A stretch of 64,000 nucleotides of DNA from positions 7,502,001-7,566,000 of the forward strand of contig NC_135808.1 of NCBI RefSeq assembly GCF_964213995.1, given 5' to 3'. Numbering within the stretch: the stretch's first letter is position 1; each line of letters begins with the position of its first letter. The notes beneath the pieces were generated by a model. It did not search any database and had not been told where the DNA came from. It saw nothing but the letters and a program-made list of their open reading frames with translations. The stretch comes from Mustelus asterias (Eukaryota). Of this stretch, positions 11,601-55,973 are shown piece after piece. The position numbers and the translations under genes were made by a program.

Positions 11601-14600
11601 CTATGATCAGGTTGATGTTAAGGAGCAAAAATAGCTGTTCAACTCAAATTGTGGAATAGACTTAGTAACGCTTCGGATATACAGCACCGTGGAAACATAT
11701 TTGCAATAGACTTTAATTTGCATTTCTTTCTCACAGACATCTGAGCTCATATGTTAATAATCGACGTTTGACAGGGCATAGTTACTTGCACTTGTGAACT
11801 CAAGACACGTGAAGACACTGTAAACAGTAGCACTTTGGAAACAACAGACATGTCTGTAATCAAGATGCGGTTTGTTGTTGGATTGTAGTTTTGTAGTTTA
11901 AATTTCAATTTCAGCACTCAAAGTTCCGCCATTGCATCATTGCAGCAGTTACAGAGATTTAAATCTCTCGCTGCCACCTTAGAAATCCCAATCAATTCTC
12001 TTCCAGTATCAACAAATGAAACGAGTGTTTTGTCCCATCGTGTACCGAATCGCACAGTAGCCTTTGATTTGATTTGATTTATTATTGTCACATGCATTAA
12101 CATACAGTGAAAATATTGTTTCTTACACGCTATACTAGCCACTCCTCAGTAAAACATGCATTTACAAAGGGTTTTCACGTGTTATATTATGCGGTTCATG
12201 ACGTGTAGGCCTGACGGAAAATGTGAGAAGGTGGGAAAAAAATGTCGCAATATTCAAACATTTGAGATGTGTAACATGCTTACTGGAATAAATGTATGGA
12301 CAGCTGGTTAGTGATGCAGAGAGATGAAAACAGCGCGTGTTCAATTCTGAGGTTATTGATTAACCTTCTGAACCTAGCTCCTCGCCTGGCGTGTGGTGAT
12401 CCTGAAGTTAAATCAGCACCAGTCAGCTCTCCCCCTCAAAGGGGAGAGCAGCTTATGGCCATCTGAGACAATGGTGACTTTCCCTTTACCTACATTAACT
12501 TGTGAGTCATAGCAGTGATGCTAAGGCGGTTATACGTGTAACTATCATGTAGCAAAAAATCTAATTGGAGCTACCGAAGAAACCTTTCTCTGGGTTGACA
12601 GCGGATGTCAATTGTGCATGAAATCGCTCTGCCCGGTTTCTTAAGGACCTGCATTTATTGACAACAATTTAAGGCCATTGTTAAAATTGTGTTAAATTGC
12701 GCCGTCTTATTTTAAGGCACCTGTTTCTCTCATTCCATCACTCACCCCCGGGACTATCTTGTGTTACGAGGAGCACCTCAATTGATTGCAACACCAGTGT
12801 AATAATGATGTGGAGATGCCGGCGTTGGAGTGGGGTGGGCACAGTAAGAATTCTCACAACGCCAGGTTCAAGTCCAACAGGGTTAGTTAATATCACGAGC
12901 TTTCGGAGCGCTGCTCCTTCATCAGGTGAGTGATGAAAGAGGTGATCACTCACCTGACGAAGAAGCTGCGCTCCGAAAGATCGGGATACCAAATAAATCT
13001 GTTGGACTTGAACCTGGTGTTGTGAGACTTCTTACAGCAGTGTAATGGCAAGCGGTAAAGTAATTGCACGGTAGTTAAAACAGAAAAAAACGGGATCACA
13101 ACAATCTAACACGTGTAAAATTAGTGCATTTTTTTAAACGAAGCACATGTTTATACTTATCACTTACGCCTTATCACTTCCAGTTGGGTGCCATTTCCAT
13201 CCCTTACTTCTGCTCCCATTAAGTACACATGACAGTAATAGGTATCTGAGTCGTTCTCGGTCAAGTCGGAAATACTAATGAATATTCTGTTGTTGACAAA
13301 GGACTCGCTGTCCGACCTCTCCAGCCTATCTTTATAAAATGGGCTATACTCCAGTTTGTAGCCTCCTGGTTTACCTCGTGTCCAGTGAGCTGCTCCGATC
13401 AGCGAATGGTATCCTTCGAATTCCAAGGCACAATTCAGTGTCACCGACTCCCCCTCTGCTGCCGTTAGGAAGGGAGGGAACTGGTAAACGGTGAAATTCA
13501 TTTCCCCACCTATTGAAAGGGGAGAAACAATAACTTTAAACAAAAGCAGCTTGTTAATTTGGGTTGGTAAATGAAACTATCATTTTATATTATATGCGGT
13601 ACAAGAAGGCACCTTTTAGGAACGATTTGCAACGGGCAATGAATACTAGCTGAGACAGCGAAGCCCACATGCTTGAATGTCTATCCTTGATTGATAGACT
13701 GTTCTCTGCAGTCGACAGTGTGAGTCCGGATCGCTGAGTTGCCTGCTTGTAGGATCGGAATCCAATCTCACAATACCCCCAACGCCAAAAGCTTCATGGA
13801 TATAAACACTGCAAACAAGCCAAACCCCAATTGAACAGTAAGGAGGTTAATCTCCAAAACAAGTGGATACCGAAACTGGGACATTCCCACCTCAAAGATG
13901 ACTATCAGACAATCCAATTACAGAAAGTGGGAGACATTGGAGCTGATGGCCCCAGACATTATACAACCAAGAAATAACAAAAGCTAAGGAGAACTGACTT
14001 TGTCACATTCATGTCAACTTGGGAGCCAGAAATATTACAACTGAAAGAGGGCAATGTTTTTGTTGTGGACACATCATGATGAATCGTTCGCCTGAACTAG
14101 GACAAGAGCTATGTGCAAAGCGATTTAAAAGTGCTAAGCACTGACCATCCGGCCAGGACATCTGCAAGCACATGCTTTTATATTTTTTATACTGTTCTGT
14201 AATAGAAAGGGCAACACAGTCGAGTTTTTCATTGCAATCACAAAGGGCAGTTAGAAAGTTCAGGCTGATTTACGGATGTTAGGGACCGGATCAGAGCATC
14301 CGAGGCGGATTATGAAGTTAAATATGATCAGAATGAATTGGCACAAAACACATAGGCCCACATGGATGCTAGATTCCCAGCCTTGTAACCCATCTGGACA
14401 GAGATTCAGAAAGACACCTGTCTTCTGATTTCCATACAAGAACCTCCAGAGAAAGATCTATCTTCAAACAGCGAACTTCAGAGAAAGACAATTACTCATG
14501 GGCAGAATTCCAGAGAGAGGCAGAGTCACAGTGAGAGGTACTTCCTTCAAAGAATTTCCAGCAGCAACTGTTTTTCTGTGTAAGCCTATTCCTAGGCAGT

Positions 14601-40391: not shown

Positions 40392-40449
40392 ATGGCATTA
40401 AGTCAACAGCTCACTCTCCTGCAGTTCATTATCTTTGCAACGCGCACGG
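40392..40449 (+). CDS. Gene B exon 1, signal peptide ([20 protein letters not shown])
   Basis: aagATGG start context, 58 nt, consensus donor G|gtgagt, phase 1 matching the V exon. Confidence 0.87.
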
Positions 40450-43400
40450 GTGAGTTAATTCTAATTTTTACTGCTTGTGGATGACACCGATAAACTAGAG
40501 TAACGTGCTAATTTTAATTGCAAATTTTGCAGCAGCTGATTTAGGAAAATATTCCCACTTTCCCGTCATCCCTACAGTTTACAGAAGGTTGCTGCACCCA
40601 TTACGAAATAGTATTGACATTGTGTTTAGCAATTAGAACACGCTCCTACCGGCAAGATTACTATTGTTTTCCGGAGCTGAGCACAAAGGGTGAGAAGTTT
40701 CCAAAGATTCCCTCGAACCCCGACCCTAATTTCTGCTGATCGATTTTCCGCCGAAGCTGCGACGGGAGGTAGACGCAACCCGCTGTAGAAATTCCGGGAT
40801 ATACTTTTTATTAGCTTTACGTAAGCTGGTTGAGGGACAATGCGTGACGGCTATAATTATTTCCGGAGATCAGTGCAAAATAGGTCATTCTGAAGCATGT
40901 TTCTATATTCCGACAGTGGGATGGAGAGCTCTACAAATTCACTTCTTTTTATTCATTATTCAAGTATGGTTATTATTTTCTAATCGTTGTTTTATTTCAT
41001 TCCTGGGATTTGCCCGACAATGGCTTTTGGGTAACGGTGCGAATTCTCAGCCCACGTTTTGGTGTTATCCAGGCCTTGAGTGAGGCGGAATGGCACAATC
41101 AAAGGTTTACCTGTTATCACAACTCAATATTAATCTGCACACACAACCCAACGTTTACCTACCCACACAACTCAACATTAACCTGCCCACACAACCCGAC
41201 ATCAACCTTCCCACACAACCCAACATTAATCTGCCTACACAATCCAAAAGTAACCTTCCCACACAACCCAACATTAATCTGCCTACACAATCCAAAATTA
41301 ACCTGCCCACACAACCCAACATTACTCTGCCCACACAACCCAACGTTTACCTGCCCACACAACTCAACATTAACCTGCCCACACAACCCGACATTAACCT
41401 GCCCACACAACCCAACATTAATCTGCCTACACAATCCAAAATTAACCTGCCCACACAACCCAACATTAATCTGCCGACACAACCCAACGTTTACCTGCCC
41501 ACACAACCCAACGTTTACCTGCCCACACAACTCAATATGAACCTGTCCACACAACTCAACATTAACCTGCCCACACAACCCAACATTAACCTGACAACAC
41601 AACCAAACGTTAACCTGATAACACAACTCAACATTAACCTGTCCACATAATGTAATATTAACCTGTCCACACAGCTCAACATTAGCCTGTCCACACTATC
41701 CAACATTAATCTGCCCACACAACTCAAAATTAATTTGCCTACACAACCCAACGTCATCCTGACAACACAACCCAACATTAATCTGCCCACACAACCCAAC
41801 ATTAATGTGACAACACAATCCAGCATTAACCTAACAACATAACCCAACATTAATCTGCTAACACAACACAACATTAAACGGCTAAAGAAAACCCACATTA
41901 ACCTAATAATTCAGCCCAACGTTAACCTGATAATCCAACCCACATTAACATGACAACCAATCTCACATTAACCTATCCACACAATCCAACAATAACCTGT
42001 CATTCTCTTGCAGACTCTGACTGGTTTGTTAGACATTTCAAACGCTTTCTTCGTGTATACTTGACGCTTGCAGAATGCGCCGTTCTATTCATTTTCTTCC
42101 CATCTCTATGAATTGCTTATTACGTTTAGCCACTCAGATTGCTGGTAGCACCTAGCGTTTGGGCATTATCCCGTTTACAGTCGAAATGTTTTTCCCAACA
42201 GATGGGCAGATGGATTTCACAATTTACCAGTTCCCTCCCTTCATAACGGCAGCAGAGGGGGAGTCGGTGACACTGAACTGTACCTTGAAATTTGAAGCAA
42301 ACCTAACCCCAATCGGAGCAACTTATTGGACACGGGGTGAACAAGGTGGCTACAGACTGGACAAGAGTCCATTTTATAAAGATCGGCTGGAGGCATCGGA
42401 CAGCAAAGCATTTGCCAACAACCGAATACATATTCATATCTCCAGGTTGATTGAGGAAGATTCAGATACATATTATTGTCATGTATCCTTAATGGGAGAA
42501 AAAGCGAGGAATGGAAGCGGTACCCATTTGGAAGTGAGGCGTAAGTAATAAGTAGAAAAAAGTGTTTTTTAAAAACTTCTCTTATTTCACACAGTGATTC
42601 GACCGCCCCGGCCCAGGATCCGCTTTGCTTTAATTTTCAGACTGTGGTAAATTACCTGACCTCATTGCAATACAGGAAGCTGGGCACCAGGGATCCGCAA
42701 ATCGTTCAAAATAGATCTTATGGCTATACTAAAATATTGCGCTCCGGAATGTATCTGCAGTTGTGTCTGGGGATGAGAAGGGTGCGGCATAGGAGCTGAC
42801 GCCAAATATATTGTAGAGCAATTGTGTTAGCAGAGTTAAAACTCCAAAAGTTCCTTGGTAATCAGGCCCCCAATTGCATCGTTCGATTAGGCCAATCAAA
42901 TCCAACCATAGTATCATTGGTCACTTCAGGCCTCATCATCTAAGTGGATATTGTTCACATTCCAATGCCTCGCTGAGCAACACTGGCTCCAAGAGCCTGT
43001 TCACAACTCATCCCTGCCAAGGATAAGCTGTTGAATCTGATACCTTATGTCCCTTGACAAATTCCAGGCCATTGGCCACAAGGAGAATCCAGCGTAGTGA
43101 AAGAAACAACTTTAACCCAAAACTCAAGTTTGCTTGATTGAAGATCTTTCAGCATATTAAAAGTTAAAACTCCATTTAGTCACAGTATGATAGGACAATT
43201 CAAAATGGCAGCAGGGAAGAAGCTGTTCTTCAGTCGATTGGTATGTTTTCTCAGACTTTTGTATCTTTTTCCGGACGGAAGTGAGTTGAAGGCGTGCGGT
43301 GTGCATGGGGTCCTTGATTATCGTGGCTGATTCCCGAGGCAGTGGGAAGTGTAGATGCAGTCAATGGGAGACTGGTTTGCGTGATGGACGAGGCTAAGTT

Positions 43401-46400
43401 CACAACCCTTTGTAGTTTCTTGCGGTCTTGGTCAGAGAGCCATAAGCATGATAAGGGGAGGTGATGGCCTACCGATATTATCGCTAGACTATTAATCCAG
43501 AAACTCAGCCCATGTTCTGGGGACCTGGGTTCAAACCCTGCCACGGCAGATGGTGGAATTTGAACTCAATAGAAAAAAACTGGAATTATGAATCTACTGA
43601 TGCCCATGAAACCGTTGCCGGTTGTCGGAAAAACCTATCTGGTTCACGAATGTCCTTTAGGGAAGGAAATCTGCCACCCTTACCTGATCTGGCCGAATTC
43701 AAAGCCACAGCAATGTGGTTGACTCTCAACTGCCCACCGAAATGGCCTCGCAAACCACTCAGTTCAAGGGCGACTAGGGATGAGCAATAAATGCTGGCCA
43801 GCCAGCAACACCCACGTCCCACAAATGAATATAAAAATTAAAAAATCCTGGTTGGCTCTCCAGTGCCTTATGGAGGTAGTGCTGCACTGTTGGAGGTGTC
43901 GACTATTGGACGGAACATTAAACCAAGTGAATGTAAAAGTCCCATGACCTTATTTCGAGGAATTTCAAGGCAGATATCCTCCATGTCCTGGCCAATATTT
44001 GCCCTTCAACCAGTATCATAAAACAAAAATAAATTATCTGCTCAGTTTCTCATTGTTATTTGTGTGAGCTTACTGTACGCAAATCGGTTGTACTTCCTAC
44101 ATGGCAAAAGGGGCCGCACCTCCAAAGTACTCAACCGGCTCCAAAGTGAATTGGGATGTACTGAGGTCGTGCAAGGCGCTATAGAAATGTATGTCTTCAT
44201 TTATGTATATATGTTTACAATCGCGCCTTTCCCATAATGCAAACAACATCTTCCCATCAAATTTTAAAACATTGACTTCATCTCCTTATTTCAGGCAAGA
44301 CTGCGGAGGAAACTATCGGAAATCCTTACCTGATATTTGGACTGGGAGGTGCTTCAGTTGTGCTGAGTATAACCGTCATTGTACTTATATGTGGACTGTC
44401 CTGGCAAAACAAAGGTGTGTGTGTCAGTCCTATTTGCTAATATGTTTTCGCTATAGTACGGAGCAATTGCTCTGGTTGCTATGAGAACCAATCTGGTTAA
44501 TGCTTCCAATGAATTTGTCACTTTTTCTAGTGTGATCAGAAACCCGATTAGTATGAGCAATTATTTTAAAACACGCTTAGGTATTCCCTTCAGAATTTTA
44601 CAATTGTTCCAATTCAGAAAGGCGCCATTCGGCCCGTCATGTCTGCGCTGGATCCACGTAGGAACAATTAACCTACTGTCACTCGCTGGCATTCTCCCCA
44701 TTTTCAGATAATAATCCAAATCAGCCTTGGAAACCTCGAGTAAATCTGATTCACTCATAATCTCAGGCACTGCATTCCAGACCCTAACCAGTCGAGTGAT
44801 AAAATATTCTCCTCTGTCGCCATTGCTTTTTAGCTAAATCACTTAAATTTGCCAGTCATTTAAATCTGTGCCCTCTGGTTCTAGATCCTTCCACTAAAGG
44901 TACCATTGTCACTATCTACTCTTGCCAGGCCCCTCGAGAATTTGAATAAATGAAAAATCTCATCACAGCCTTTTGTCTCCAAAGACAAAAGTCCACCTTT
45001 CTTAATCAATATGAAATGCCTTAGTCCAATGAAGAAGGAAATATCATCAGAGACCCAGACAAGACGGTGGCCTAGTGGCATTGTCGATAGATTAATAATC
45101 CAGAAGCTCAGCTAATGTTCTGGGGACCCGGGTTCGAATCCCACCTCAGCAGATGGTGGAATTTGAATTCAATAAAATATATCTGGAATTGAGAATCTAC
45201 CGATGACCATAAAAAAGGTTGTCAGAAAAACCCATCTGGTTTACTGGTGTCCTTTAGGGAAGGAAATCTGCCTTTGCTGCCTGGTCTGACCTACATGTGA
45301 TTCTGGAGCCACAGCAATGTGGTTGACTCTCAACTGCCCTCGGGTAACTAGGAATGGGCAATAAATGCTAACCAGCCAGCCCATGTCCCACGAATGCATA
45401 AAAAAGAATCTCTACAGTGCAGAAGGAGGCCATTCAACCTATCGAGTTCACACCGACTCTCCAAGAAATTTCCCACACCCCAAACCTCATGTAATCACCC
45501 TAACCCACTAATCCTGGGACACTAAAGGGAAATTTAATATAGCCAATCCCCCTAGCCTGCACATTTTGGATTCTGGGAGGAAGTAGGAGCACCCGGAGAA
45601 AACCCACACGGACACGGGGAGAATGTGCCAACTCCACATGGACAGTCACGCAAGGCTGGAAGTGAACCTGGGTTCCTGGTGTTGTGACGCAGCACCATAT
45701 TCATGCACTCATCCGTGCATATGTATCGCAATCAGTTTCTCTATGTCAGTGTTAAAGATCAATTTTATGTTTTAATAAGTAGCAGATTTAAACAATTATA
45801 TTAACGTCAGTATCATTTTCTTCCAGTTATCCGGAGACTAAGAAGGTAAAAAATATCAAATCTTATCAAATTGGTGATTATTCAGAACATGATGTGCAGA
45901 ATTTTAAATTTAAACATCATTTTGCTTCCTACAGACAGCGCGCTGAAATCGATGTGGTACCTGGTATGTGAATTTTATGTATTCTGCATTAATTACTATT
46001 CCTGGCTAATTGAAAACAAATCTAAAATAAAAAATACATTTACAAATAGTTTCATTCCAATGAATTCAATCTCTGTTGCTACCTGTGCCTATGTATGTCT
46101 GTTATGTTTGTTGTACTTATAGCTCTGACCCATCTCTGAATGCTATTCCCACAGCACCAGCCGATCTACAGCCAGCGACACAGGTAAGAGCGTCCTGATA
46201 AGCAATAGCTTTCCACAAATTCGCTATACCTTATCTCCAGCGATGGGTCTGCTCTATTCCCTCCCGGCTTTCAATATCCTGTATATGCTTGTGAAGGTTT
46301 GACTCTGTTACAACAAAATGGGAGAAATGTTTATACATTCCGACCAAATTAAATCAGCCGTAAACCATGTACAGTACAATATTGAATTAGTTATTTCAGT

Positions 46401-49400
46401 CTCAGAGGTCGCAAGGTCCGAAATGAGATAAGTAGACTTATATAAGTAAGGATCTTTCCAGAGTTTTGTGCGTCAGGATGTTGATCAAGCAGAGTAGAGG
46501 CAAATTCGCCTTCTGGACTATAGCAGATCCGGAAATATGGCATCATGCTACATATTGAGATTGCAGCAATGTGTTCCATTGGACCGCGTTGACGATTGTC
46601 ATCCGAATGAACACAAACATACATTAACCATTTGTGGTGCTATACTCAGGCATACCTCATCTCATTGTGGTGCCTTTTCTCTTCTTATCACGCACAATTT
46701 AAGTAATACTACCTTAGGCGTGTTTCAAACATTGTAACTCCATGAATAATTAATTTTTAAAAAATAAGTTTTGATGCTATATTTATATTTCTAACCAAGA
46801 TAAACTTAACAATTTCTCATTCCCGTTTTTCCCTATGGCGTGGTGCCAGCTTGCATGACTCTCAAGAGGGTACGTGGCAAACAACCGGATTAATTATTTG
46901 TCAGATGTGACTTCCCACCTTAAATTTTCAGAAGTTTCACTTTTCTCCGCAGAAACCACTCCAGGATCATTCTGGAAGATAATAACAACTGCACTCTGTT
47001 TTCCTCTACGAGTTTAAACCACTTTCCTCATTACCTACACTCCCATCTCCAGAAACATGTGAGAGAAACCCCAGAGTTTTTTTTCTCCGACCATAGAGGC
47101 CGATTCTCCAGTTGTCAGGTTCATAGAATCCATTGGATCCCTATAGTGCAGAAGGAAGCCATTCGGCCCATCGAGTCTGCACCGACCATAATCCCACCCA
47201 GGCCCTATCCCCATAATCCCATGCATTTACCCTAGCTAGACCCCCTGACATTAAGGGGCAATTTAGCACGGCCAATCCACCTAACCAGCACATCTTCGGA
47301 CTGTGGGAGAAAACCGCAGCACCCAGCGGAAACCCAGGCAAACACGGGGAGAATGTGTAGACTCCACACAGACGGTGACCCGAGGCCGGAATTGAACCCA
47401 GGTCCCTGACGCTGTGAAGTAGCAGTGCTAACCACTGTGCCACCGTTCCCTCCATCTTTCCTTTATCTACTAAGTCAAATCTTCCATCGTACTGTCTCCA
47501 CTGATTCCCTGAAATTTGGTCTCTTATTAGGCCCTGCCCAATTCCCCGCAACCCCTCCAAATTCATTTCATTCATGAGATCCCCATTCTCATCTCTTCAC
47601 CAGTATTCTGCAAGGATTGTCACAGGAAACAATCTCTCTCCTGTGGAGTAATTTCAAGAAAAGATTCCTTGCCCTTGGTGAAACACTCTGTGCATTTTTT
47701 CTTTTCCTGCTCGTCCATTTGTCCTTGCTGTGTTGCTGTTGTACGATATCTTTAGTTTTCGGAGGTTTCAACAGATCGAGTGTGGAAGACAGGAAACATC
47801 TTGGTCGCGGAGTGTGCGGTATTCCTGCACACCAATAGGAATTTGTTAAGTCATTTGATCAGAGAACCTTGTTCTCTGGTCGCTCTCAAGGTATGTTTCA
47901 TAGCTTGGATGAAACATTCTGCGGCGCCCATTTGTCAGAGGGTGGGACAGTGTGGACTTAATAAGTTGAATACCATTCTCTCGTAAGAAACGTTTGAATT
48001 CTTGCAGGGCAAATTGAGATCCATTCCCACTTATAAGTTGCTCAGGGAATGCAAAATGATGAAACACTTCTCCAAGCTTCTCAATCGTCTTCTGCGGTGA
48101 GACAGATGTCATCACAGCGACCTCTGACCACTTGTATAAGCATCGACCGATACCAAGAACATATTGGCGGCATGGTGGCACGGTGGTTAGCACTGCTGCC
48201 TCACAGTGCCTGGGACTCAGGTTCAATTCCTGGCTTGAGTCACTGTCTGTACGGAGTCTGCACGTTCTCTCCGTATCTGCGTTAGTTTCCTCTGGATGCT
48301 CCGGTTTCCTCCCACAGTCTGCTTATGTGCATTGGCCATGGTAAACCTCCCTCAGCGTACCCGAACGGGTGCCAGAGAGTGGCGACTAGAGGACTTCCAC
48401 AGTAACTTAATTGCAGTGTTAATGTCAGCCTACTTGTTCATCCATAGCGAGGCAAAGAGGAGTGATTTGCTGCAGGAGTCTGGGGTAAGAGATCGACTTT
48501 TAACATTACTTTTTTTGCGGGCTTTATTTTTTTTAAACTTTAAAACGGGAAGTAGCCGCGGGGTATTGTGGGAAGGGTGTAGATTTTGTTTTCAGCTCGG
48601 GAGGGTTAAGAGCAGGCCGCACTACCCAGCGGGCAGCGTCGTTAGCGGGCAGCGGAGTGAGGGCTGAAGGGCTTTGGCTCAACGGGCTTAGGAGGAAACG
48701 GGCGAGGCATGTTAGGTTCATCTCGTAGTTTTACCAGTGTACTTGAAGAAAGGGGAATTATGAGTGAAAGTCCAGTTTGTTGTTCTCGGTGTCGGATGTG
48801 GGAGTTCCTGGAGGCAGCTAGCCTCCAGCACGTCCATATCTGCACCGGTTGCATCGAACTGCAGCTCCGAAGGGACCGCGTTACGGTACTGGAGCTGCGG
48901 CTCGATGACCTTCGTCTGGTCAGGGAAAATGAGGAGCTGATAGATAGGAGTTCATAGAAATCATAGAAATCATAGAAACCCTACAGTACAGAAAGAGGCC
49001 ATTCGGCCCATCGAGTCTGCACCGACCGCAATCCCACCCAGGTTCTACCCCCATATCCACCCACTAATCCCTCTAACCTACGCATCTCAGGAAACTAAGA
49101 GAAATTTTTAGCATGGCCAATCAACCTAACCCGCACATCTTTGGACTGTGGGAGGAAACCGGAGCACCCGGAGGAAACCCACGCAGACACGAGGAGAATG
49201 TGCAAACTCCACACAGACAGTGACCCAAGCCGGGAATCGAACCCAGGTCCCTGGAGCTGTGAAGCAGCAGTGCTAACCACTGTGCTACCGTGCCGCCCCT
49301 CTTTACCGTAACTCTGTAAAGAGTTACAGGCAGGTGGTCACACCGGGGCCACAGGAGGAAGACACGTGGGCCACAGTTAGGAAGGGGAAAGGTCACGTAC

Positions 49401-52400
49401 TACAGAGTACCCCGGTGGCTGTGCCCCTTAAAAATAAGTACTCCTGTTTGAGTGCTGTTGTGGGGAGCAGCCTACCTGGGGGAAGCAACAGTGGCTGTGC
49501 CTCCGGCACAGAGTCTGGCCCGGCAGCTCAGAAGGGTAGGGAAAGGGAGGATGGATCGTGTTTTCGAAATCCTTAAGGGGGAGGTGGACCAGCCCCAAGT
49601 CGTGCAGGGAAAGTGGTAAAAGAGGGAGAGGTGTGGCATTGTTAGTCAAGGACAGTATTACAGTGGCAGAAAGGACATTTGATCAGGACTCGTCTACTGA
49701 AGTAGTTTGGGCTGAGGTTAGAAACAGGAAAGGAGAGGTCACCCTGTTGGGGGTTTTTTATAGACCTCCGAAAAGTTCCAGAGACGTAGAGGAAAGGATT
49801 GCAAAGACGATTCTGGATAGGAGCGAAAATAACAGTGCAGTTGTTATGGGGGACTTTAACTTTACAAATATTAACTGGAAAAGCTATAGTTCGAGTACCT
49901 TAGAGGGGTCAGTTTTTGTCTAATGTGTGCAGGAAGGCTTCCTGACACAGTATGTAGATAGACCAACAAGAGGCGAGGCCACATTGGATTTGGTACTGGG
50001 TAATGAACCAGGCCACGTGTTAGATTTGGCGGTAGGTGAGCACTTTGGTGATAGTGACCACAATTCTATTACGTTTACCTTAGCAATGGAAAGGGATAGG
50101 TATATACCGAAGGGCAAGAGTTATAGCTGGGGGGAAGGAAATTATGATGCGAATAGGTAAGATTTAGGTGGCATAGGTTGGGGAAGGAAACTGCAGGGGA
50201 TGGGCACAATTGTAATGTGGAGCTTGTTCAAGGAACAGCTACTACGCATCCTCGATAAATATGTACCTGTCAGGCAGGGAGGAAGCAGACGTGTGAGGGA
50301 ACCATGGTTTACTAAAGAGGTTGAACCTGTTGTGAAGAGGAAGAAGGAGACTTATGTTAAGATGAGACGTGAAGGCTCAGTTAGGGCGCTTGAGAGTTAC
50401 AAGCTGGCCAGGAAGGACCTAAAGAAAAAGTTAAGAAGAGCCAGGAGGCGGCATTACAGGTCTTTGGCAGGTAGGATCAAGGAAAACCCTAAGGCTTTCT
50501 ATAGGTATGTCAGGAGTAAAAGAATGACTCGGGTAAGATTAGGGCCAGTCAAGGACAGTAGTGGGAAGTTATGCGTGGAGTCTGAAGAGATAGGAGAGGC
50601 ACTGAATGAATATTCTTCATCGGTATTCACACAGGAGAGGGACAGTGTTGTCGAGGGGAGTACTGAGATGCAGGCTGTTGGACTGGATGGGATTGAGGTT
50701 CATAAGGAGGAGGTGTTAGCGACTCTGGAAAGGGTAAAATAGATAAATCCCCTGGGCCGGATGGGATTTATCCTAGGATTCTCTGGGAGGGAAGAGAGGA
50801 GATTGCAGAGCGTTTGGCTTGTTCTTTGTGTCGTCAGTGTCTACAGGAACAGTGCCAGAAGACTGGAGGATAGCAAATGTTGTCCCCTTGTTCAAGAAGG
50901 GGAGTAGGGACCACCCTGGTCATTATAGAGCGGTGAGCCTTACTTCTGTTGTGGGCAAAGTTTTGGAAAGGATTATAAGAGATAGGGTTTATAATCATCC
51001 AGAAAGGAATAATATGATTAGGGATAATCAGCACGGTTTTGTGAAGGGTAGGTCGTGCCTCACAAACCTTATTGAGTTCTTCGAGAAGGTGACCAAAGAG
51101 CTGGATGAGGGTACAGTGGTTGATGTGGTGTATGTGGATTTCAGCAAGCGTTTGATCAGGGTCCCCATGGTAAGCGATTGAGGGTGATTTAGTGGTTTGG
51201 ATCAGGAATTGGCTAGCTGTAAGAAAACAGAGGGTGGTGGTGGATGGGAAATATTCATCCTGGAGTTCAGTTACTCGTGGTGTACCGCAAGGATCTGTTT
51301 TGGGGCCACTGCTGTTTGTCATTTTTATAAATGACCTGGATGAGGGCGTAAAAGGATGGATTAGTAAATTTGCAGATGACGCTAAAGTCGGTGGAGTTGT
51401 AGACAGTGTGGAGGGAAGTGGCAGGTGACAAGGGGATATAGATAAGCTGCAGAGCTGGGATGAGAGGTGGCAAATGGAGTTTAATTCGGAAAAGTGTGAG
51501 GTGATTCACTTTGGAAGGAGTAACAGGAATACGGAGTACTGGGCTAATGGTAAGATACTTGATAGTGTGGATGAACAGAGGGATCTGAGTGACCATGTGC
51601 ATAGATCCCTGAAAGTTGGTACCCAGGTTGATAGGGGGTTGTTAAGAAGGCATACGGCGTGTTAGCTTTTATTGGTAGAGGGATTGAGTTTCGGAGCCAT
51701 GAGGTCATGCTGCCACTGTACAAAACTCTGGTGCGGCCGCACTTGGAGTATTGCGTACAGTGCTGGTCGCCGCATTATAGGAAAGATGTGGAAGCGTTGG
51801 AAAGGGTGCAGAGGAGATTTACCAGGATGTTGCCAGGCATGGTGGGAAGATCGGATGAGGAAAGGCTGAGGGACTTGAGGTTGTTTTCGTTAGAGAGAAG
51901 AAGGTTAAGAGGTGACTTAATAGAGGCATACAAGATAATCAGAGGATTAGATAGGATGGATAGTGAGAGCTTTTTTCCTCGGATGGTGATGGCTAACACG
52001 AGGGGACAGAGCTTTAAATTGAGGGGTGATAGATATGGGACAGATGTCAGAGGTAGGTTCTTTACTCAGAGAGTAGTAAGGGCGTGGAATGCCCTGCCTG
52101 CAGCAGTAGTGGACTCGTCAACATTAAAAGCATTCAAATGGTTATTGGATAAACATATGGATGATATTGGAATAGTGCAGATTAGAGGGGCTTTAGATTG
52201 GTTTCACTGATCAGTGCAACATCGAGGGCCGAATGGCCTGTACTGCGCTGTAATATTCTATGTTCTATGTTCTTGTGACTAATATATACATTTTACGTCC
52301 TTCAGAAGGTCCTGCAAAATCCACATGCATGTATCGCCACGCCTCTACAACCCGTTCCCATGTATTTCCTCTATGTGTACCACTCACAATGACCCTCATA

Positions 52401-54838
52401 TAGCTTCTCTAACACCTGTTCCCTCGATGGAGGCGGAATACGTTCTCTGAGCCCCCAGTCAACACACACTGACTCCAATTTCCCGGAGCAGTAGGATTTC
52501 AGATTTATTCTTGCTCTGAGGTCTTGCCTCATAATACCATATCCATCACTTCTGAAAGTATTGGATCACTCCAAGTGTGCTGCCTCCTTTGTTTGGAGTG
52601 ACTGATGTGTTTTCTACTTGATCAACGTAGAAAGTATTCCCACTTGAGTAGTTTGATGAACTACCTGGCAGTGGTAATCTTGAAAGTCCATCTGCATTAC
52701 CATGTAGACTTGACTGTTGATACTTAATAACGTAGGTAGTTCAGACAAAAGCAATGCCTCTCTTTTCATTGTACTTGTTACAGCTGACAGAATTCCCATG
52801 TGTGGTCCAAAAATAGTAGCTAATGGACAATGGTCCATTAACAATGCGAACTTCCTGCTGTACAAGAATTGATGGAATTTCTTTACTCCAAAAATGATTC
52901 CTAATGCTTCCCTTTCAATCTGGGAAGGGTCACTTTCACCTTTTCTCAGGGTTCAAGAAGCAAAAGCAATGGGTGATGGCAAGTTGCGAGGGACCACTAC
53001 TCCTGAACCATAAGGAGATGCATTGCAAGCTAACTGAGGATCAAAGTGCATGAGAGGTTCAGATTTAAGTAACGCTCAGTCCATTCAGGATCTGATCCGT
53101 TGCTATTTGAATTAATGCAGGAAATAATCTGATACCAAATGGTCATCTTCGGTACTGGAAGAAGCCTGTATGTGTCAGAATCGGCAGAAGGTCCTGCGAC
53201 TTCTTGTTCACGTTTATCTGTAAGTAGGCTTGGCTCAGATCAATTTTGCTGTAATCTGGGTTCTCAGGTTGCCTGCAACTATGCTAAGGGAAGTGGGCAC
53301 CATAATATCTTCAACTATTTTGTTTGCCTGTGAAAAACAATCAAAATGTTCAGTATAAGAGCTTCGTGGCTCCACATTTTCATCAGAGTCCCAGGACACA
53401 GAAAACCCCTGCCTTTTTCTACTAATGTACGTTTCCCCTATGCGCACTTTGCAACTGTGTTCTAGCAGCTACGTTGATTCCCACACACACAAGTTTCAGC
53501 CTCATTTATCACAGGTAGCGGGTACAATATGTTTTGTAGGCAGACTATCGTTAATCACGTCTAACTAGCCCGTTGGTTCTCTTGAGCACATGTTTGACAG
53601 GTGAAACGCTTTCCTTTCTAACTTTCCTTTTGTCCAACTGTTCTCGGTAAAATTCTTCTTCCCGAGTGGCTAGCCAGCATATGTTCATAGTCCTCGTCGC
53701 CAGTTTTTCTGTTGTAGTTTGGAGGTATGGTGCCAGGGAGAATGGCTGAGCTCTTACATAGCTGTTCTACTCTCTGTTTCCCGTTCTAGGATGTGTGGCG
53801 TCACTTCCGGAGAATACATTCAATCAACAGAGTTTCAGTTTAAGTTAAACTTATGTTTTAGTGTCACAACTGGGCTTCCATTAACACTGCAATGAAGTTA
53901 CTGTGAAAATCCCCTAGTCGCCACACTCCAGTGTCTATTCAGGTACACTGAGGCGGAATTTAGCATGGCTAATGCACCTAACCAGCACATCTTTCACACT
54001 GTGGGAGGAAACCGGAGCACCCGGAGGAAACCCACGCAGACAGGATTTAACGTGCAAACTCCACACAGACAGAGACCCAAGCCAGGAATTGAACCCTCGT
54101 CCCTGGCGCTGTGAAGCAGCAGTGCTAACCATTGTGCCTCCGTACTGCCCAAGAGTTAGAGCCAATAAGAAGTAACGCAAATACGTGACAATATGGGGGG
54201 ACGATTTTTGATGAGGTGTGCTTAAAATCTAGAAGGCACTGACTAAGTGTCATGGAGGGAAATTCAATTATATCTTCAAAGATTGGAGATTGGATAGTTT
54301 TCTAAAGAGGACATATTTGCAGGGCAACAACAAACAGTGCGGGACTGTTATTGGTTGAGTTGTTCTTGTAGATCGGACACGGACACAATAAGACAAATAT
54401 ATCCTTCTGTGGTGTAGACAAAGCGCCACCAATCAACTCTGAAAGGAGAGAGTAACCTATGGTCCTCTGGGACTATGGCGACGTTTACAAACTATTTACT
54501 TGTCTCAACTCATCTCCACCAACCTGGGCCACCACTTGCGATGCTAAACTCTTTCTCCGTCTTAACTCTGCATTTTTTCTTTTCCTGATTACACATTACT
54601 CTGATTCCTTTGAAATTTTTTCTACGTTAAGGATGCTGTAAACATGTGAAATGATGTAGCTGTAATTCTGCGCACTGCGGATGAAACATATTTTTTATCT
54701 TATTGCAATGATTATTAGGTTCACTCTAATCGTGGCAGTATTTCCCTACATTACGCCAAACTGAAAATCAAGCAACAGAAGAAGGCAAAGAAAATGAACT
54801 ATGACACAGATCATGCCGAATACGCCACCATCCGCTGA
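40392..54838 (+). CDS. NCR3-like: Gene B: NKp30/NCR3-like single IgV(J) inhibitory receptor with ITIM and ITSM-like tail. Exons 40392-40449, 42202-42540, 44295-44414, 45827-45845, 45935-45963, 46155-46183, 54719-54838; 237 aa
   Basis: Seven exons (58+339+120+19+29+29+120=714 nt), all GT-AG, join into one open frame: leader, [29 protein letters not shown], then [68 protein letters not shown]. Confidence 0.87.
41093..42001 (+). repeat. 24-bp minisatellite (consensus about AACATTAACCTGCCCACACAACCC), about 37-38 units, in intron 1 of gene B
   Basis: Tandem 24-nt periodicity visible directly; the ORF track shows 8-aa repeats (NINLPTQP). Confidence 0.95.
42202..42540 (+). CDS. NCR3-like: Gene B exon 2, VJ-type IgV domain (NKp30-like)
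   Basis: Acceptor tgtttttcccaacag, donor gtaagt, 339 nt, phase 1-1. Contains VTLNC, IGATYW, DSDTYYC and GSGTHLEV. Confidence 0.93.
43455..43835 (+). mobile_element. SINE family 2
   Basis: Full-length, with B-box-like GGTTCAAACC. Confidence 0.85.
43860..44200 (+). mobile_element. DeuSINE-like element (AmnSINE1/SacSINE1-type)
   Basis: GTGCTGCACTGTTGGAGGTG...TCCTGGCCAATATTT...CTGAGGTCGTGCAAGGCGCTATAGAAATG resembles the Deu domain and tail as I recall them. Confidence 0.65.
44295..44414 (+). CDS. Gene B exon 3, stalk plus uncharged transmembrane segment
   Basis: Acceptor tctccttatttcag, donor AAG|gtgtgt, 120 nt, phase 1-1. Encodes [40 protein letters not shown]. Confidence 0.88.
45062..45695. 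mobile_element. SINE family 2 (45062-45405, plus) tail-to-tail with an HE1 V-SINE (45405-45695, minus)
   Basis: Each part matches other copies in the window. Confidence 0.85.
45827..45845 (+). CDS. Gene B exon 4, 19-nt micro-exon (VIRRLR, juxtamembrane basic patch)
   Basis: Acceptor cattttcttccag, donor AAG|gtaaaa; phase 1 to 2. Confidence 0.72.
45935..45963 (+). CDS. Gene B exon 5, 29-nt micro-exon ([10 protein letters not shown])
   Basis: Acceptor ttttgcttcctacag, donor CTG|gtatgt; phase 2 to 1. Confidence 0.72.
46155..46183 (+). CDS. Gene B exon 6, 29-nt micro-exon ([10 protein letters not shown])
   Basis: Acceptor tgctattcccacag, donor CAG|gtaaga; phase 1 to 0, matching the terminal exon. 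Confidence 0.75.
47120..47446 (-). mobile_element. HE1-type V-SINE
   Basis: Full-length copy. Confidence 0.9.
48165..48437 (+). mobile_element. V-SINE with alternative tail; the end of its tail resumes at 52272
   Basis: ...GCCTACTTGT | CR1 | CTTGTGACTAAT. Confidence 0.85.
48438..52271 (+). mobile_element. CR1 LINE retaining 5'UTR and ORF1 start, internally deleted, with disrupted ORF2 (endonuclease plus RT) and (TTCTATG)n tail
   Basis: ORF1 [20 protein letters not shown]..leucine zipper; APE YRPP, MGDFN, LDLVL, SDHN; RT motifs; several stops and frameshifts. Confidence 0.95.
48953..49300 (-). mobile_element. HE1-type V-SINE inserted in CR1 ORF1
   Basis: GAGTT duplicated at 48948-48952 and 49321-49325; ORF1 reads IDRS|YRQVVTPG across the insertion. 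Confidence 0.92.
53838..54150 (-). mobile_element. V-SINE with alternative 3' tail
   Basis: Reverse complement of the 32247 copy. Confidence 0.88.
54719..54838 (+). CDS. Gene B terminal coding exon with ITIM (LHYAKL, 54746-54763) and ITSM-like motif (AEYATI, 54815-54832)
   Basis: Acceptor ttttttatcttattgcaatgattattag, 39 codons plus TGA, two Tyr motifs 23 aa apart, followed by AT-rich non-repeat sequence with AATAAA. Confidence 0.88.
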   Translation, partial: VHSNRGSISLHYAKLKIKQQKKAKKMNYDTDHAEYATIR

Positions 54839-55369
54839 AGCAGTGGGAAGAAACTTGAAACACTGCAATATCCTGACCCTCCATTAATCCTACCTCGCAC
54901 TGAGCCGTATCTGGCACACTGATTTCCTTGTTCGCTATTACACTGCTAATAATTAAACTTGTTCAATGTTAACTATGAATATGCGCGAATATGCTGTTGT
55001 TTACGAATTGTTGAATACACCAACCTTGAAATTACTCAACTTGAAGAGGCGCTGTGCCTCTTCAAGAACTTATAATCAGATCTTCATTCTCATGATCAAA
55101 TTGTACATTTTGCCAACAATGGGAAACAGAAGAATGTGGGGAAGGAGATCTACTGGGTCACTACTTGCAGGAAATGTGTAAATCAATCAGTGAAAATGTC
55201 ATTGCGTGAATATTTCTGCTAAATTCACGAGAAAGGTTATTTGCTGTCTCCCTTGGTATTTGATTCAAGTGATCTTCCCAATTTGATTCCATTATTGACA
55301 AGAAATAATAATCCAAGTACTATCACAAAATGTAAATGTATGAGTTATAGTTAACTGCTTTCAGCTTCC

Positions 55370-55375
55370 AATAAA
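55370..55375 (+). terminator. Candidate polyadenylation signal of gene B (second AATAAA at 55437-55442)
   Basis: AATAAA about 530 nt after the stop codon. Confidence 0.55.
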
Positions 55376-55841
55376 AATTAAAGTGCTTGATCATCTTAAC
55401 TCTGTGTTGCAGATCATAGTATTCTATTAATTTTGCAATAAACCCTGCAATTCTGTGCTTGACATTTTCTCAGATTCAGTGTCCCGACTCATGCACATGC
55501 AAGGGGAGGTAGGGCTCAGTATCATTTGGAGTAAATAGTTTCCTATAATATATCGCAGGGGAAAATAGAAAATAAGTCGATATTTCAAACCTTCGAGTCC
55601 GTCCTATAGATTAATACGGTCATTTTATATTATCATATCATTTTATAAACCTGCAATTTCACCGTATGCACCTGACACAGCTCCATATCCCTTAATAGCC
55701 ATTGGTATTCAAAACATCAGTCCATCTCAGATTGTACTTAATAAATTATATTTTATGGGAGATACTTTGGCATAGTTCATGACTTACAACAGTCAGGAAT
55801 ATGGAGTCCAGGAAGAGGATAAATCAGCCATGGTTAATGAA

Positions 55842-55973
55842 CACAGTAAGAAGTCTCACAACACCAGATTAAAGTCTAACAGGTTTATTTGGAATCACCA
55901 GCTTTCAGAGCGCTGCTCCTTCACAAGGTGAGTGACTCACCTGAAGAAGGAGCAGCGCTCTGAAAGCTCGTGA
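55842..55973. mobile_element. Penelope terminus with hairpin junction
   Basis: AGCTTTCAGAGCGCTGCTCCTTCACAAGGTGAGT-G-ACTCACCTGAAGAAGGAGCAGCGCTCTGAAAGCT. Confidence 0.8.

Follow-up and report, generated by a model that had tools for sequence, protein, structure and literature searches.

Does a terminal exon that encodes two tyrosine motifs reminiscent of PD-1, placed downstream of an NKp30-like V domain, connect the NKp30 and CD28/PD-1 branches of immune receptors, or is it the ordinary tail of a receptor family that is already known from sharks? The question is raised by a receptor gene, here called gene B, in a 64,000-nt stretch of the Mustelus asterias genome (the window; contig NC_135808.1, positions 7,502,001 to 7,566,000), the last coding exon of which reads LHYAKL and, farther on, AEYATI. 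NKp30 is commonly taught as an activating receptor. We propose that gene B belongs to the known NCR3 (NKp30) multigene family of sharks as an inhibitory receptor, partnered by a neighbouring gene, gene A, that has a lysine in its membrane span, a reading to which we assign a probability of roughly 0.75, and that the likeness of its tail to that of PD-1 is most likely the product of convergence on the preferences of the SHP SH2 domains.

Exon structure of gene B

Gene B probably encodes, in five coding exons on the + strand between 40392 and 54838, a type I membrane receptor about 221 residues long. Its parts are as follows:

40392..40449, +, leader exon, phase-1 donor g/gtgagt
42202..42540, +, V exon, 339 nt, phase 1-1, VJ-type V-set ending GSGTHLEVR
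44295..44414, +, stalk and transmembrane exon, 120 nt, phase 1-1
46155..46183, +, micro-exon, 29 nt, (A)PADLQPATQ, phase 1 in and phase 0 out
46184..54718, +, last intron, 8,535 nt, retroelement debris
54719..54838, +, terminal coding exon, 120 nt, 39 codons and TGA (54836-38)
54746..54763, +, motif 1, LHYAKL (Tyr12), canonical ITIM, from translation and motif scan
54815..54832, +, motif 2, AEYATI (Tyr35), ITIM-derived with Ala at -2, from translation and motif scan
54839..54990, +, 3' UTR, AATAAT/ATTAAA poly(A) signals at 54948-54957

The exon phases run 1, 1-1, 1-1, 1-0 and 0, the GT and AG sites are canonical, and the coding parts sum to 666 nt. The leader matches the N-terminus MALSRQLTLLQLILVATHTG of the catshark proteins P0001, P0002 and P0158. 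The membrane span holds zero charged residues, and the exon that encodes it aligns with the transmembrane regions of nurse shark P0005 (E=5e-07) and Heptranchias P0008 and also resembles that of catshark P0158. The micro-exon, which is left by a CAG/GTAAGA donor at 46183/46184, has the counterparts APANLQPATQ (catshark P0002 and P0158) and AVPNLQRTTQ (nurse shark P0005), and use of an alternative AG at 46121-22, upstream of it, would read into an in-frame TGA. Relatives in catshark, nurse shark and Heptranchias have a further 16-residue exon (...ILRLKR...), placed after the transmembrane exon and before the micro-exon, that was not found in the window.

An earlier note on this DNA had placed the terminal exon some 8.5 kb past the previous one, across retroelements and off the open reading frame track, and had read it as S-LHYAKL...AEYATIR* (the asterisk marking the stop) with tyrosines 23 residues apart; intron length, translation, frame and splice signals all agree with that description. 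The last intron contains LINE endonuclease (Exo_endo_phos) and reverse-transcriptase (RVT_1) fragments at 49558-51425 (+), an integrase (rve) fragment at 47846-48223 (-) and SINE-like open reading frame copies, and tblastn detected no second tail-like exon within it. The acceptor context is ...ttttttatcttattgcaatgattattAG/G with the AG at 54717-18, and because the codon preceding 54719 is TAG, the frame opens exactly at the acceptor. It is missing from the open reading frame lists of the window at both the 50-aa and the 20-aa minimum. The result is a firm five-exon model, including a 29-nt micro-exon and a distant last exon that open reading frame finders overlook, for a predicted inhibitory-type NKp30-family receptor that lies beside an activating-type twin in a shark.

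Integrity and transcription of the terminal exon

DNA-like contigs from two runs of one sample span the terminal exon. Haplotype 1 leaves the coding part unchanged, and the sole change in haplotype 2 is a synonymous C>T at 54724 (His); the contig carrying the exon has 17 differing letters over about 1,045 nt, just one of them inside the 120-nt exon. Both haplotypes keep the frame open, which means that neither the stop codon nor the Ala at -2 of motif 2 is an assembly slip. In a run from another sample (X2), a single 180-nt contig (54762-54941) covers only terminal exon and 3' UTR, and depth falls to zero in the adjoining intron bins 54200-54712 and over 54998-55795. This is the pattern expected of RNA and hints at transcription, X2 being presumably an RNA run; the contig begins 43 nt short of the acceptor and so leaves the junction uncovered.

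A motif pair of this kind could in principle belong to no exon at all but to an open frame that arose by chance behind a fortuitous AG. The absence of the exon from the open reading frame lists would fit such an origin, as would the frequency of the loose pair (an ITIM, 14-30 residues, then xYxx[VI]), of which the six frames of the window hold 10 against 8.9 +/- 3.6 expected (50 shuffles), so that the motif pair by itself does not stand above chance. What does stand above chance is whole-exon homology to the tails of related receptors: six tails from four shark species align along the exon behind the same upstream micro-exon. The tblastn match with the tail of catshark P0002 (E=2.7e-16) and the alignment of the tails led to rejection of the chance frame, the probability of which is negligible; by homology rather than by motif statistics, the exon is the real last coding exon of gene B.

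The exon could also be a true homologue in a gene that is silent or decaying in Mustelus asterias, its constraint relaxed. The 8.5-kb intron filled with retroelements, the lack of the 16-residue exon, Ala at -2 and an early stop can all be taken in this sense, as can the individual loss of Tyr1 or Tyr2 in paralogues of other sharks; the stop falls 18 codons ahead of that of catshark LOC119976781, and the downstream DNA still looks like the extension, the first about 45 nt of the 3' UTR resembling the catshark C-terminal extension (tblastn read-through past the stop, R*SSGKKLETLQYPDPP versus catshark RSICGKELQTPQNPDPP). Against this, all five exons are open and have canonical splice sites, the frame is intact on both haplotypes apart from the one synonymous change, and the X2 contig is restricted to terminal exon and 3' UTR. 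The nurse shark and Heptranchias tails also end one residue past ...ATI, and the stop of gene B is therefore normal for the family; the 16-residue exon is likewise missing from Heptranchias XP_067830066 and from a Pristiophorus protein. We regard decay as unlikely.

Homology of the tail in other sharks

The six tails share 25/39, 20/34, 18/36, 18/39, 13/39 and 13/39 identities with the terminal exon. The junction ...LQPATQ/VHS... and the tail follow an NKp30-like V domain and transmembrane region in catshark XP_038673485 (P0002) and LOC119976539 X1 (P0158), and the arrangement of micro-exon and tail recurs in nurse shark QTT61901.1 (P0005, named NCR3), in Heptranchias XP_067829801 and XP_067830066 and in a Pristiophorus protein. 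Conservation of the two motifs in other sharks had been set beforehand as the test on which the idea of a tandem-motif tail could fail, and it held: in an alignment composed mostly of automatic gene models, Tyr1 is kept in 6/7 tails (Asn in nurse shark QTT61901.1), Tyr2 in 6/7 (one catshark model, LOC119976539, stops just before it), and the spacing is exactly 23 in 5/5 rows that have both. The single losses indicate that full constraint does not lie on every copy. Since relatives in other sharks carry both motifs, gene B counts as a regular member of its family and does not form a bridge to PD-1.

Motif 1 (L-H-Y-A-K-L) agrees with the ITIM consensus (S/I/V/L)xYxx(I/V/L) that is given, beside TxYxx(V/I) for the ITSM, in excerpts of PMC12151841, and its earlier description as a canonical LxYxxL ITIM is confirmed. 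The exon model puts both motifs on the cytoplasmic side, downstream of the transmembrane exon, and the same tail lies downstream of a transmembrane helix in P0158, P0005 and P0155. Motif 2 reads VEYATI, VEYASI, LEYASV or LEYSTI in the relatives; among the 157 related proteins scanned, the seven with xEY[AS][TS][IV] have Val (4) or Leu (3) and never Thr at -2. Given Val or Leu at this position in 7/7 relatives, the shark family carries tandem ITIMs; judged from the aligned sequences, its second motif is [V/L]EYA[T/S][I/V], an ITIM, of which AEYATI in the window is a derived form. The Ala at -2 lies outside both the ITIM and the ITSM consensus and may weaken binding.

The second motif had been labelled an ITSM, and a genuine ITSM that binds SAP/SH2D1A-type adaptors would make the receptor bifunctional. 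The motif does resemble PD-1 TEYATI in 5/6 residues, and a more distant relative in manta ray (P0128) has LMYACV followed 23 residues on by TEYAGI, but the defining Thr at -2 is missing in the window and in 7/7 close relatives with the motif, and phosphorylation-independent binding of SH2D1A requires, according to a passage of PMC12151841, a hydrophobic residue at -1, where motif 2 has Glu. The label is thus withdrawn, and SAP-type bifunctionality is extremely unlikely. The remark that the motif is one residue off TEYATI was right in its count, but the one residue that differs is the very Thr that defines an ITSM.

The V domain and membership in the NCR3 family

The V exon scores as a Pfam V-set (E=9.9e-14), and the domain that it encodes shares 66% identity with a catshark protein and 60% with nurse shark NCR3, its nearest proteins bearing the names NCR3 or NCR3-like. 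It is a single, non-rearranging, VJ-type V-set domain with the J-like GxGTxLxV at the exon end (GSGTHLEV), and G104, G106, T107 and V111 are (near-)invariant across a 35-row V alignment. In keeping with the NKp30-like domain originally noticed, the AlphaFold model (pLDDT 92) has human NKp30 as its four best Foldseek matches (TM 0.79-0.84), with SIRP second, and phmmer gives NKp30 at 2.5e-07, tied with SIRP-beta-1. PD-1, CD28 and CTLA-4 were absent from the 60 best phmmer rows and from the Foldseek matches listed to rank 49. The charged transmembrane residue of the mammalian activating NCR3 form is absent from gene B, and with its uncharged helix gene B is therefore an NCR3 member by descent and not an activating one.

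The closest known system is nurse shark QTT61901.1, with which gene B shares the order of leader, VJ-type V domain (60% identical), uncharged transmembrane segment, micro-exon and terminal exon. Its tail ends ...HVEYATIY where that of gene B ends ...HAEYATIR, and it differs in having Asn for Tyr12, Val at -2 of motif 2 and the extra 16-residue exon (AILRLKRDLGATNTTY). By sequence, gene B is a member of the shark NCR3 (NKp30) family that this protein exemplifies. Eight divergent subtypes of shark NCR3 (NKp30) family genes were reportedly described by Kinlein and coworkers in 2021.

Structurally, the V domain comes closest to human NKp30 (3pv6_B, 3noi_A, 6yjp_A; rmsd 2.2-2.6 A, 29-30% identity), likewise a receptor with a single VJ-type V domain. 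Excerpts of PMC6514059 describe the human NCRs as having a transmembrane segment with a charged residue (Arg or Lys), ITAM adaptors and tails without signalling capacity of their own, save for NKp44; with its uncharged transmembrane segment and two tyrosine motifs, gene B is therefore predicted to signal in the opposite direction to human NKp30. SIRP-alpha and SIRP-beta are the second-best match in fold and sequence, and SIRP-alpha, like gene B with gene A, has an activating partner with a transmembrane Lys and a near-identical ectodomain. Through the paired motifs hYADL ... xEYAS[I/V], SIRP-alpha recruits SHP-1/2. The SIRPs differ from gene B in their V-C1-C1 ectodomains and four tyrosines.

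Comparison with PD-1

Kinship of the tail with that of PD-1 or the CD28 family, whether by descent or by exon shuffling, would link the NKp30 and CD28/PD-1 branches, as the earlier note had suggested. Gene B and PD-1 both have an ITIM-like motif followed by xEYATI, with an identical EYATI core, equal motif order and the tandem SH2 domains of SHP-2 as the expected partner, and the spacing of 23 is similar to that of the human PD-1 tyrosines, given in a portion of PMC12151841 as Y223 and Y248. The same portion gives the second-motif consensus of jawed-vertebrate PD-1 as (T/V)EYATIx(F/Y), with Thr not favoured in primitive vertebrates, so that the VEYATI consensus of the shark NCR3 family is identical to the fish-type PD-1 core, and it reports Ala at ITIM +1 in cartilaginous-fish PD-1, as in gene B.

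The likeness spans six residues only, however, and nearly all of them are explained by the preferences of the SHP-2 C-SH2 domain as set out in that part of PMC12151841. Motif 1 with its flanks (SLHYAKLKI) does not fit the (I/V)(D/E)YG(E/V)L(D/E)F given there for PD-1, LHYAKLKI agreeing just at generic ITIM positions; the protein stops at +4 of motif 2 and is thereby without the F/Y of PD-1 at +5; and PD-1 has Thr at -2 where gene B has Ala and its relatives Val or Leu. The V domain is not PD-1-like: its fold matches are led by NKp30, SIRP comes next, and neither a PD-1 nor a CD28 chain is among the matches listed. A search with the tail returned NCR3-like proteins only (3/3 candidates), and the tail had no match among the sequences of solved structures (PDB). 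Its first half is common to turtle NCR3-like proteins, and its 23-residue spacing also occurs in a frog protein named CEACAM2-like by NCBI, which fits convergence on SH2 geometry. Kinship with the PD-1 tail is hence very unlikely, and the convergent acquisition that had been offered as the alternative is favoured. Of the reading of gene B as a checkpoint-type receptor, a tail anatomy suited to SHP recruitment and conserved in sharks stands, while the bridge to PD-1 falls; we take the resemblance as one of working and not of membership. A match of six residues is no ground for kinship with PD-1 where the preference of the C-terminal SH2 domain in SHP-2 is for just the xEYATI core that both have.

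Proposed mechanism and the neighbouring gene

For gene B as an inhibitory NCR3-family receptor, we infer that its exons are spliced together in this animal, that its tail is phosphorylated, recruits SHP phosphatases and inhibits, and that it pairs with gene A. Engagement of a ligand would lead Src-family kinases to phosphorylate both tyrosines of the tail, which would then dock SHP-2 or SHP-1 by their tandem SH2 domains, the N-SH2 domain binding motif 1 with its Leu at +3 and the C-SH2 domain motif 2 with its Ala at +1 and its Ile at +3. The phosphatase would then dampen signalling by ITAM-coupled receptors, gene A probably among them. According to passages of PMC12151841, the C-SH2 domain of SHP-2 prefers Ala at +1 and Ile at +3 and the N-SH2 domain Leu at +3; the order of the motifs in gene B matches these preferences, which we count in support of the mechanism.

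Two exons of gene A bear on the pairing:

13175..13507, -, V exon of gene A, 69% identity to the V exon of gene B (E=2.5e-52)
11432..11566, -, transmembrane exon of gene A, Lys in the membrane span, stalk Cys

Similar V domains, a transmembrane Lys in gene A, and an uncharged transmembrane segment with an ITIM tail in gene B make up the arrangement by which paired receptors of the SIRP, KIR and NITR type are recognised. Gene A, the head-to-head neighbour, is probably one of the ITAM-coupled receptors that gene B would dampen.

Ancestry of the tail

Both tyrosines and their spacing of 23 are kept over shark lineages, and motif 1 is kept out to turtles. Three sea-turtle NCR3-like proteins (Chelonia mydas XP_037770176 and XP_037769981, Caretta caretta XP_074975714) are collinear with catshark P0158 across the V domain, transmembrane region and tail (E=6e-20). 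The green turtle tail segment GHGSRGAEESESLHYAEIKIQ aligns with the tail encoded in the window (13/36 identities, E=1e-4), and a hidden Markov model of the shark tail gives E=6e-05 and 2e-04 for the turtle proteins, whereas the best reversed control reaches 7. The turtle tails differ in stopping shortly past the first ITIM and have no motif 2. As turtle NCR3-like proteins share it, the first half of the tail is a long-standing feature of the NCR3 family. These data suggest that an SHP-type inhibitory tail may have accompanied the family from the time of early jawed vertebrates onward.

It is conceivable that an ITIM tail was the ancestral state for the NCR3/NKp30 family across all jawed vertebrates, although we hold this tentatively and at less than even odds; the idea was not found stated in the literature searched, a scope outside which Kinlein 2021 and Flajnik 2012 lie. 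Were it so, the earliest receptor of the NKp30 type would have been an inhibitory one, or would already have formed half of an inhibitory and activating pair, and the activating-only NKp30 of mammals would be a remnant from which these exons were lost. The signature of micro-exon and tail can be used for annotating NKp30-like loci in the Mustelus asterias genome. Weaker alignments link the shark tail to one protein of manta ray (E=0.03) and one of bichir (E=0.38), and a tandem spacing of 22-23 residues also occurs in ray, bichir and frog relatives. In its ancestral form, the tail would consist of the micro-exon and an exon of the pattern '...H-x-S-R-G ... S-[VL]-[HQ]-Y-A-x-[ILV]-x-I'.

Structure of gene B and its terminal exon

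The model of gene B, the plus-strand receptor gene with an NKp30-like V domain, is given below; the exons were analyzed singly in searches and folding, and the coding length of 666 nt (221 residues) was obtained by adding their lengths.

Exons of gene B (window positions, strand, content)
40392-40449, +, leader exon
42202-42540, +, V exon
44295-44414, +, stalk and transmembrane exon, membrane span without a charged residue
46155-46183, +, micro-exon, (A)PADLQPATQ, donor CAG/GTAAGA
54719-54838, +, terminal exon

The exon phases are 1 / 1-1 / 1-1 / 1-0 / 0. Upstream of the terminal exon lie a pyrimidine-rich tract and, at 54717-18, an AG; because the codon just before 54719 is TAG, the frame of the exon opens exactly at the acceptor. 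The predicted splice runs from 46183 to 54719. Translation yields 39 residues followed by TGA, with Tyr12 (Tyr1) lying within LHYAKL (motif 1) and Tyr35 (Tyr2) within AEYATI (motif 2), 23 residues apart, while a third tyrosine (MNYDTD) is Cys in catshark and is not conserved. Poly(A)-type signals, AATAAT/ATTAAA, follow at 54948-57. An earlier note, made from the sequence alone, had described this exon as absent from the ORF track and far downstream across retroelements, and both statements held: the frame is missing from the ORF lists of the window at 50 aa and at 20 aa, and the last intron, of 8,535 nt, contains LINE endonuclease and reverse transcriptase fragments, an integrase fragment, and SINE-like copies. 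No second copy of the tail exon was found in the window, where it is thus single-copy, and Pfam returned no family for the transmembrane and tail exons. The 16-residue '...ILRLKR...' exon carried by relatives was not found in the introns of gene B by tblastn or regular expression: the one candidate (45826) runs straight into a stop, and the other matches were at chance level. We treat this exon as absent from the gene. Intron 1 holds a long tandem array at 41010-41900, a minisatellite of ~24 nt over about 0.9 kb, the frames of which translate as repeated 8-residue units (e.g., PTQPNINL / CPHNPTLT).

Homology of the tail in other sharks

Motif statistics were dropped as evidence for the tail, as the loose pattern (an ITIM with xYxx[VI] 14-30 residues further on in an open frame, counted in all six frames of the window and in fifty block shuffles) occurs at chance level, with 10 pairs in the window and 8.9 +/- 3.6 in the shuffles. 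The case for a tail exon lies instead in the homology of the whole exon and its junction. Searching with the V exon returned two catshark and two bamboo-shark proteins, and a full HMMER scan with a cut-off of E<=0.001 brought up 192 relatives, the best 150 being listed. At the junction of micro-exon and tail, catshark XP_038673485 reads ...APANLQPATQ VHSTRGSDEDDSVQYAKVNIKEGKKTRTMNCDTRHVEYATIRSICGKELQ..., and the X1 isoform of catshark LOC119976539 has the order V domain, transmembrane helix (closely resembling that of gene B), 16-residue exon, micro-exon, and tail. Nurse shark QTT61901.1, named natural cytotoxicity triggering receptor 3, comprises a V domain, a transmembrane region, the 16-residue exon, AVPNLQRTTQ, and VRSNRGS...HVEYATIY, and tails of the same type occur on Heptranchias XP_067829801 and XP_067830066 and on a Pristiophorus protein. 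Conversely, the catshark tail matched the window by tblastn at 54719-54883 (E=2.7e-16), and the micro-exon was matched too.

In a seven-row alignment of these tails, identities to gene B were 25/39, 20/34, 18/36, 18/39, 13/39, and 13/39. Tyr1 is kept in six of the seven rows, being Asn in nurse shark QTT61901.1, and Tyr2 likewise in six, the model of catshark LOC119976539 ending ...RHVE, exactly before it, such that these two family members each lack one tyrosine. All five rows with both tyrosines have an ungapped spacing of exactly 23. The reading in the earlier note depended in part on conservation of the two motifs in other sharks, and on this point the retention of both tyrosines and of their spacing speaks for it.

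Other searches with the tail returned little. Sequences of solved structures gave no match at E<=10, and the best ESM Atlas score (0.86) was to an unnamed cluster and not usable. Residues 149-218 of catshark XP_038673485 returned three candidates among 5.8 billion proteins, all catshark NCR3-like, in a search that requires common 5-residue words and thus says little on distant tails.

Gene B ends directly after ...ATIR. Past its TGA, the DNA (54836-54883) continues as SSGKKLETLQYPDPP, a match to the 18-residue extension at the C-terminus of catshark LOC119976781 (SICGKELQTPQNPDPP); the position of the stop has thus shifted between lineages. The X2 isoforms of catshark (XP_038673485 and that of LOC119976539) skip the transmembrane exon and keep the 16-residue exon, micro-exon, and tail, and are possibly soluble or mis-predicted forms.

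V domain and the neighboring gene

The NKp30-like character of the V domain, also proposed in the earlier note, was confirmed. The V exon matched Pfam V-set (E=9.9e-14), and against solved structures its sequence placed SIRP-beta-1 and human NKp30 in a tie at 2.5e-07. From a 35-row alignment, AlphaFold gave a model with a pLDDT of 92.1, and among the Foldseek matches listed for it the four best were human NKp30 (TM 0.79-0.84), followed by SIRP-alpha, IgNAR, and antibody V domains, with no PD-1 or CD28 chain among those listed.

Gene A, the minus-strand neighbor, lies head-to-head with gene B.

Exons of gene A (window positions, strand, content)
13175-13507, -, V exon, 69% identical to that of gene B
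11432-11566, -, transmembrane exon, Lys in the membrane span, unpaired stalk Cys

Such an arrangement is typical of activating/inhibitory pairs, gene A being the putative activating-type twin.

Second motif and likeness to PD-1

The earlier note had called motif 2 an ITSM. Passages of PMC12151841 give the ITSM consensus as TxYxx(V/I); gene B has Ala at -2, and among 157 related proteins scanned, the seven with xEY[AS][TS][IV] (two of which are isoforms of one Heterodontus gene) have Val (4) or Leu (3) there and none has Thr. Because this position is Val or Leu and never Thr in the carriers, the second motif of the family is to be classed as an ITIM by its residues, and the ITSM label was withdrawn. 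The Ala of gene B, present in both haplotypes of the sequenced animal (no difference listed at 54815-17), is a derived change. A distant relative in a manta ray has LMYACV and, 23 residues later, TEYAGI; this protein (P0128, Mobula birostris), the second motif of which is a true TxYxxI, is one of the single-V relatives with two tail tyrosine motifs, as are P0071 of the frog Spea bombifrons (also 23 apart) and P0135 of the bichir Polypterus senegalus (22 apart).

In the most likely mechanism, Tyr12 and Tyr35 would be phosphorylated, and SHP-2 or SHP-1 would dock on them through its tandem SH2 domains. According to passages of PMC12151841, the C-SH2 domain of SHP-2 favors Ala at +1 as well as Ile at +3, and its N-SH2 domain favors Leu at +3, preferences that the order LHYAKL, AEYATI fits; it is also argued there that SAP-type 'switch' binding requires a hydrophobic residue at -1, which in motif 2 is Glu. 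At least one tail ITIM was found in 28 of the 84 V-domain relatives with a transmembrane-like segment. Their tandem tyrosine spacings cluster at 18-25, most commonly 23, and since this cluster takes in a frog protein named CEACAM2-like by NCBI, the spacing mirrors SH2 geometry and is no evidence of kinship.

The resemblance to PD-1 is closer than the earlier note knew: the second-motif consensus given in passages of PMC12151841 is (T/V)EYATIx(F/Y), with Thr not favored in primitive vertebrates, so the VEYATI of the shark family equals the fish-type PD-1 core. Passages of PMC11599192 differ in emphasis on the chondrichthyan motifs, describing the ITSM consensus as kept in amniotes and chondrichthyan PD-1 as without conserved ITIM-related motifs. 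The likeness is, however, limited to the six residues of motif 2. Motif 1 and the flanks fall outside the PD-1 consensus, the protein does not extend past +4 of motif 2, the V domain is unlike that of PD-1, and tail searches return NCR3-like proteins only. On these differences the proposal that gene B links the NKp30 and CD28/PD-1 branches was abandoned in favor of the alternative offered alongside it, a convergently acquired tail. We conclude from the sequence comparisons that the tail's likeness to PD-1 is probably convergence, and that gene B, which would work like PD-1, BTLA, and SIRP-alpha, stands outside the CD28/PD-1 family.

Age of the tail and previous descriptions

An HMM built from the seven tails was run on 158 proteins and their reversed copies.

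Tail HMM matches outside the training set
Sea-turtle protein, E=6e-05
Second sea-turtle protein, E=2e-04
Second catshark gene, E=0.0027
Manta ray, E=0.03
Bichir, E=0.38
Best reversed sequence (control), E=7

The cluster of the second turtle match includes proteins named NCR3-like by NCBI. Green turtle XP_037769981 shares H-x-S-R-G...S-L-H-Y-A-x-[LI]-K-I with the terminal exon of gene B (13/36, E=1e-4) and is collinear with catshark LOC119976539 (P0158) from V domain through tail (E=6e-20); unlike gene B, the sea-turtle tails are without motif 2. These matches tentatively suggest that an ITIM tail is an old trait of the NCR3 family, a reading to which we give odds of about one in three because its basis is short segments and automatically made gene models.

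The shark NCR3 multigene family is already published, and a nurse shark NCR3 protein with the tail is in GenBank (QTT61901.1, presumably part of the MT914154-61 set). A full-text search, with Kinlein 2021 and Flajnik 2012 beyond its reach, found no paper in which NCR3 genes of sharks or reptiles are described with ITIM tails.

Sequencing reads and haplotypes

None of the sequencing runs holding the terminal exon stretch is on record as RNA. Three runs of one study (X1, X2, and X3) were placed on 54200-55900, and their contigs showed no splice junction. X1 and X3 are from one sample and have even, DNA-like cover at about 13x. The X1 contig differs from the window by 2 letters. That of X3 represents the other haplotype: over about 1,045 nt (54200-55245) it has 17 differing letters and 2 gaps (inserted letters), about 1.8%, and only 54724 C>T falls in the 120-nt exon, where it is synonymous. 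This number of differences, with one coding, points to two well-diverged haplotypes of the gene B locus in one animal.

X2 was made from a second sample and has 184 million letters in contigs. Apart from the high-copy repeat at the right end, its only contig here is one of 180 nt without differences (54762-54941), which begins 43 nt short of the acceptor; X2 depth is zero in the bins 54200-54712 and 54998-55795. This pattern of cover, in one low-depth contig from a run picked because it contains these words, appears RNA-like and gives a hint of gene B transcription.

Contig depth reaches about 240 across 54428-54484 and 10^5-10^6 across 55796-55900, and contigs connect 54482 to 55845 via 7 other letters; the depth jumps and this connection look like other genomic copies of repeats, not a deletion allele. 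X2 depth is likewise high on the high-copy element at the right end.
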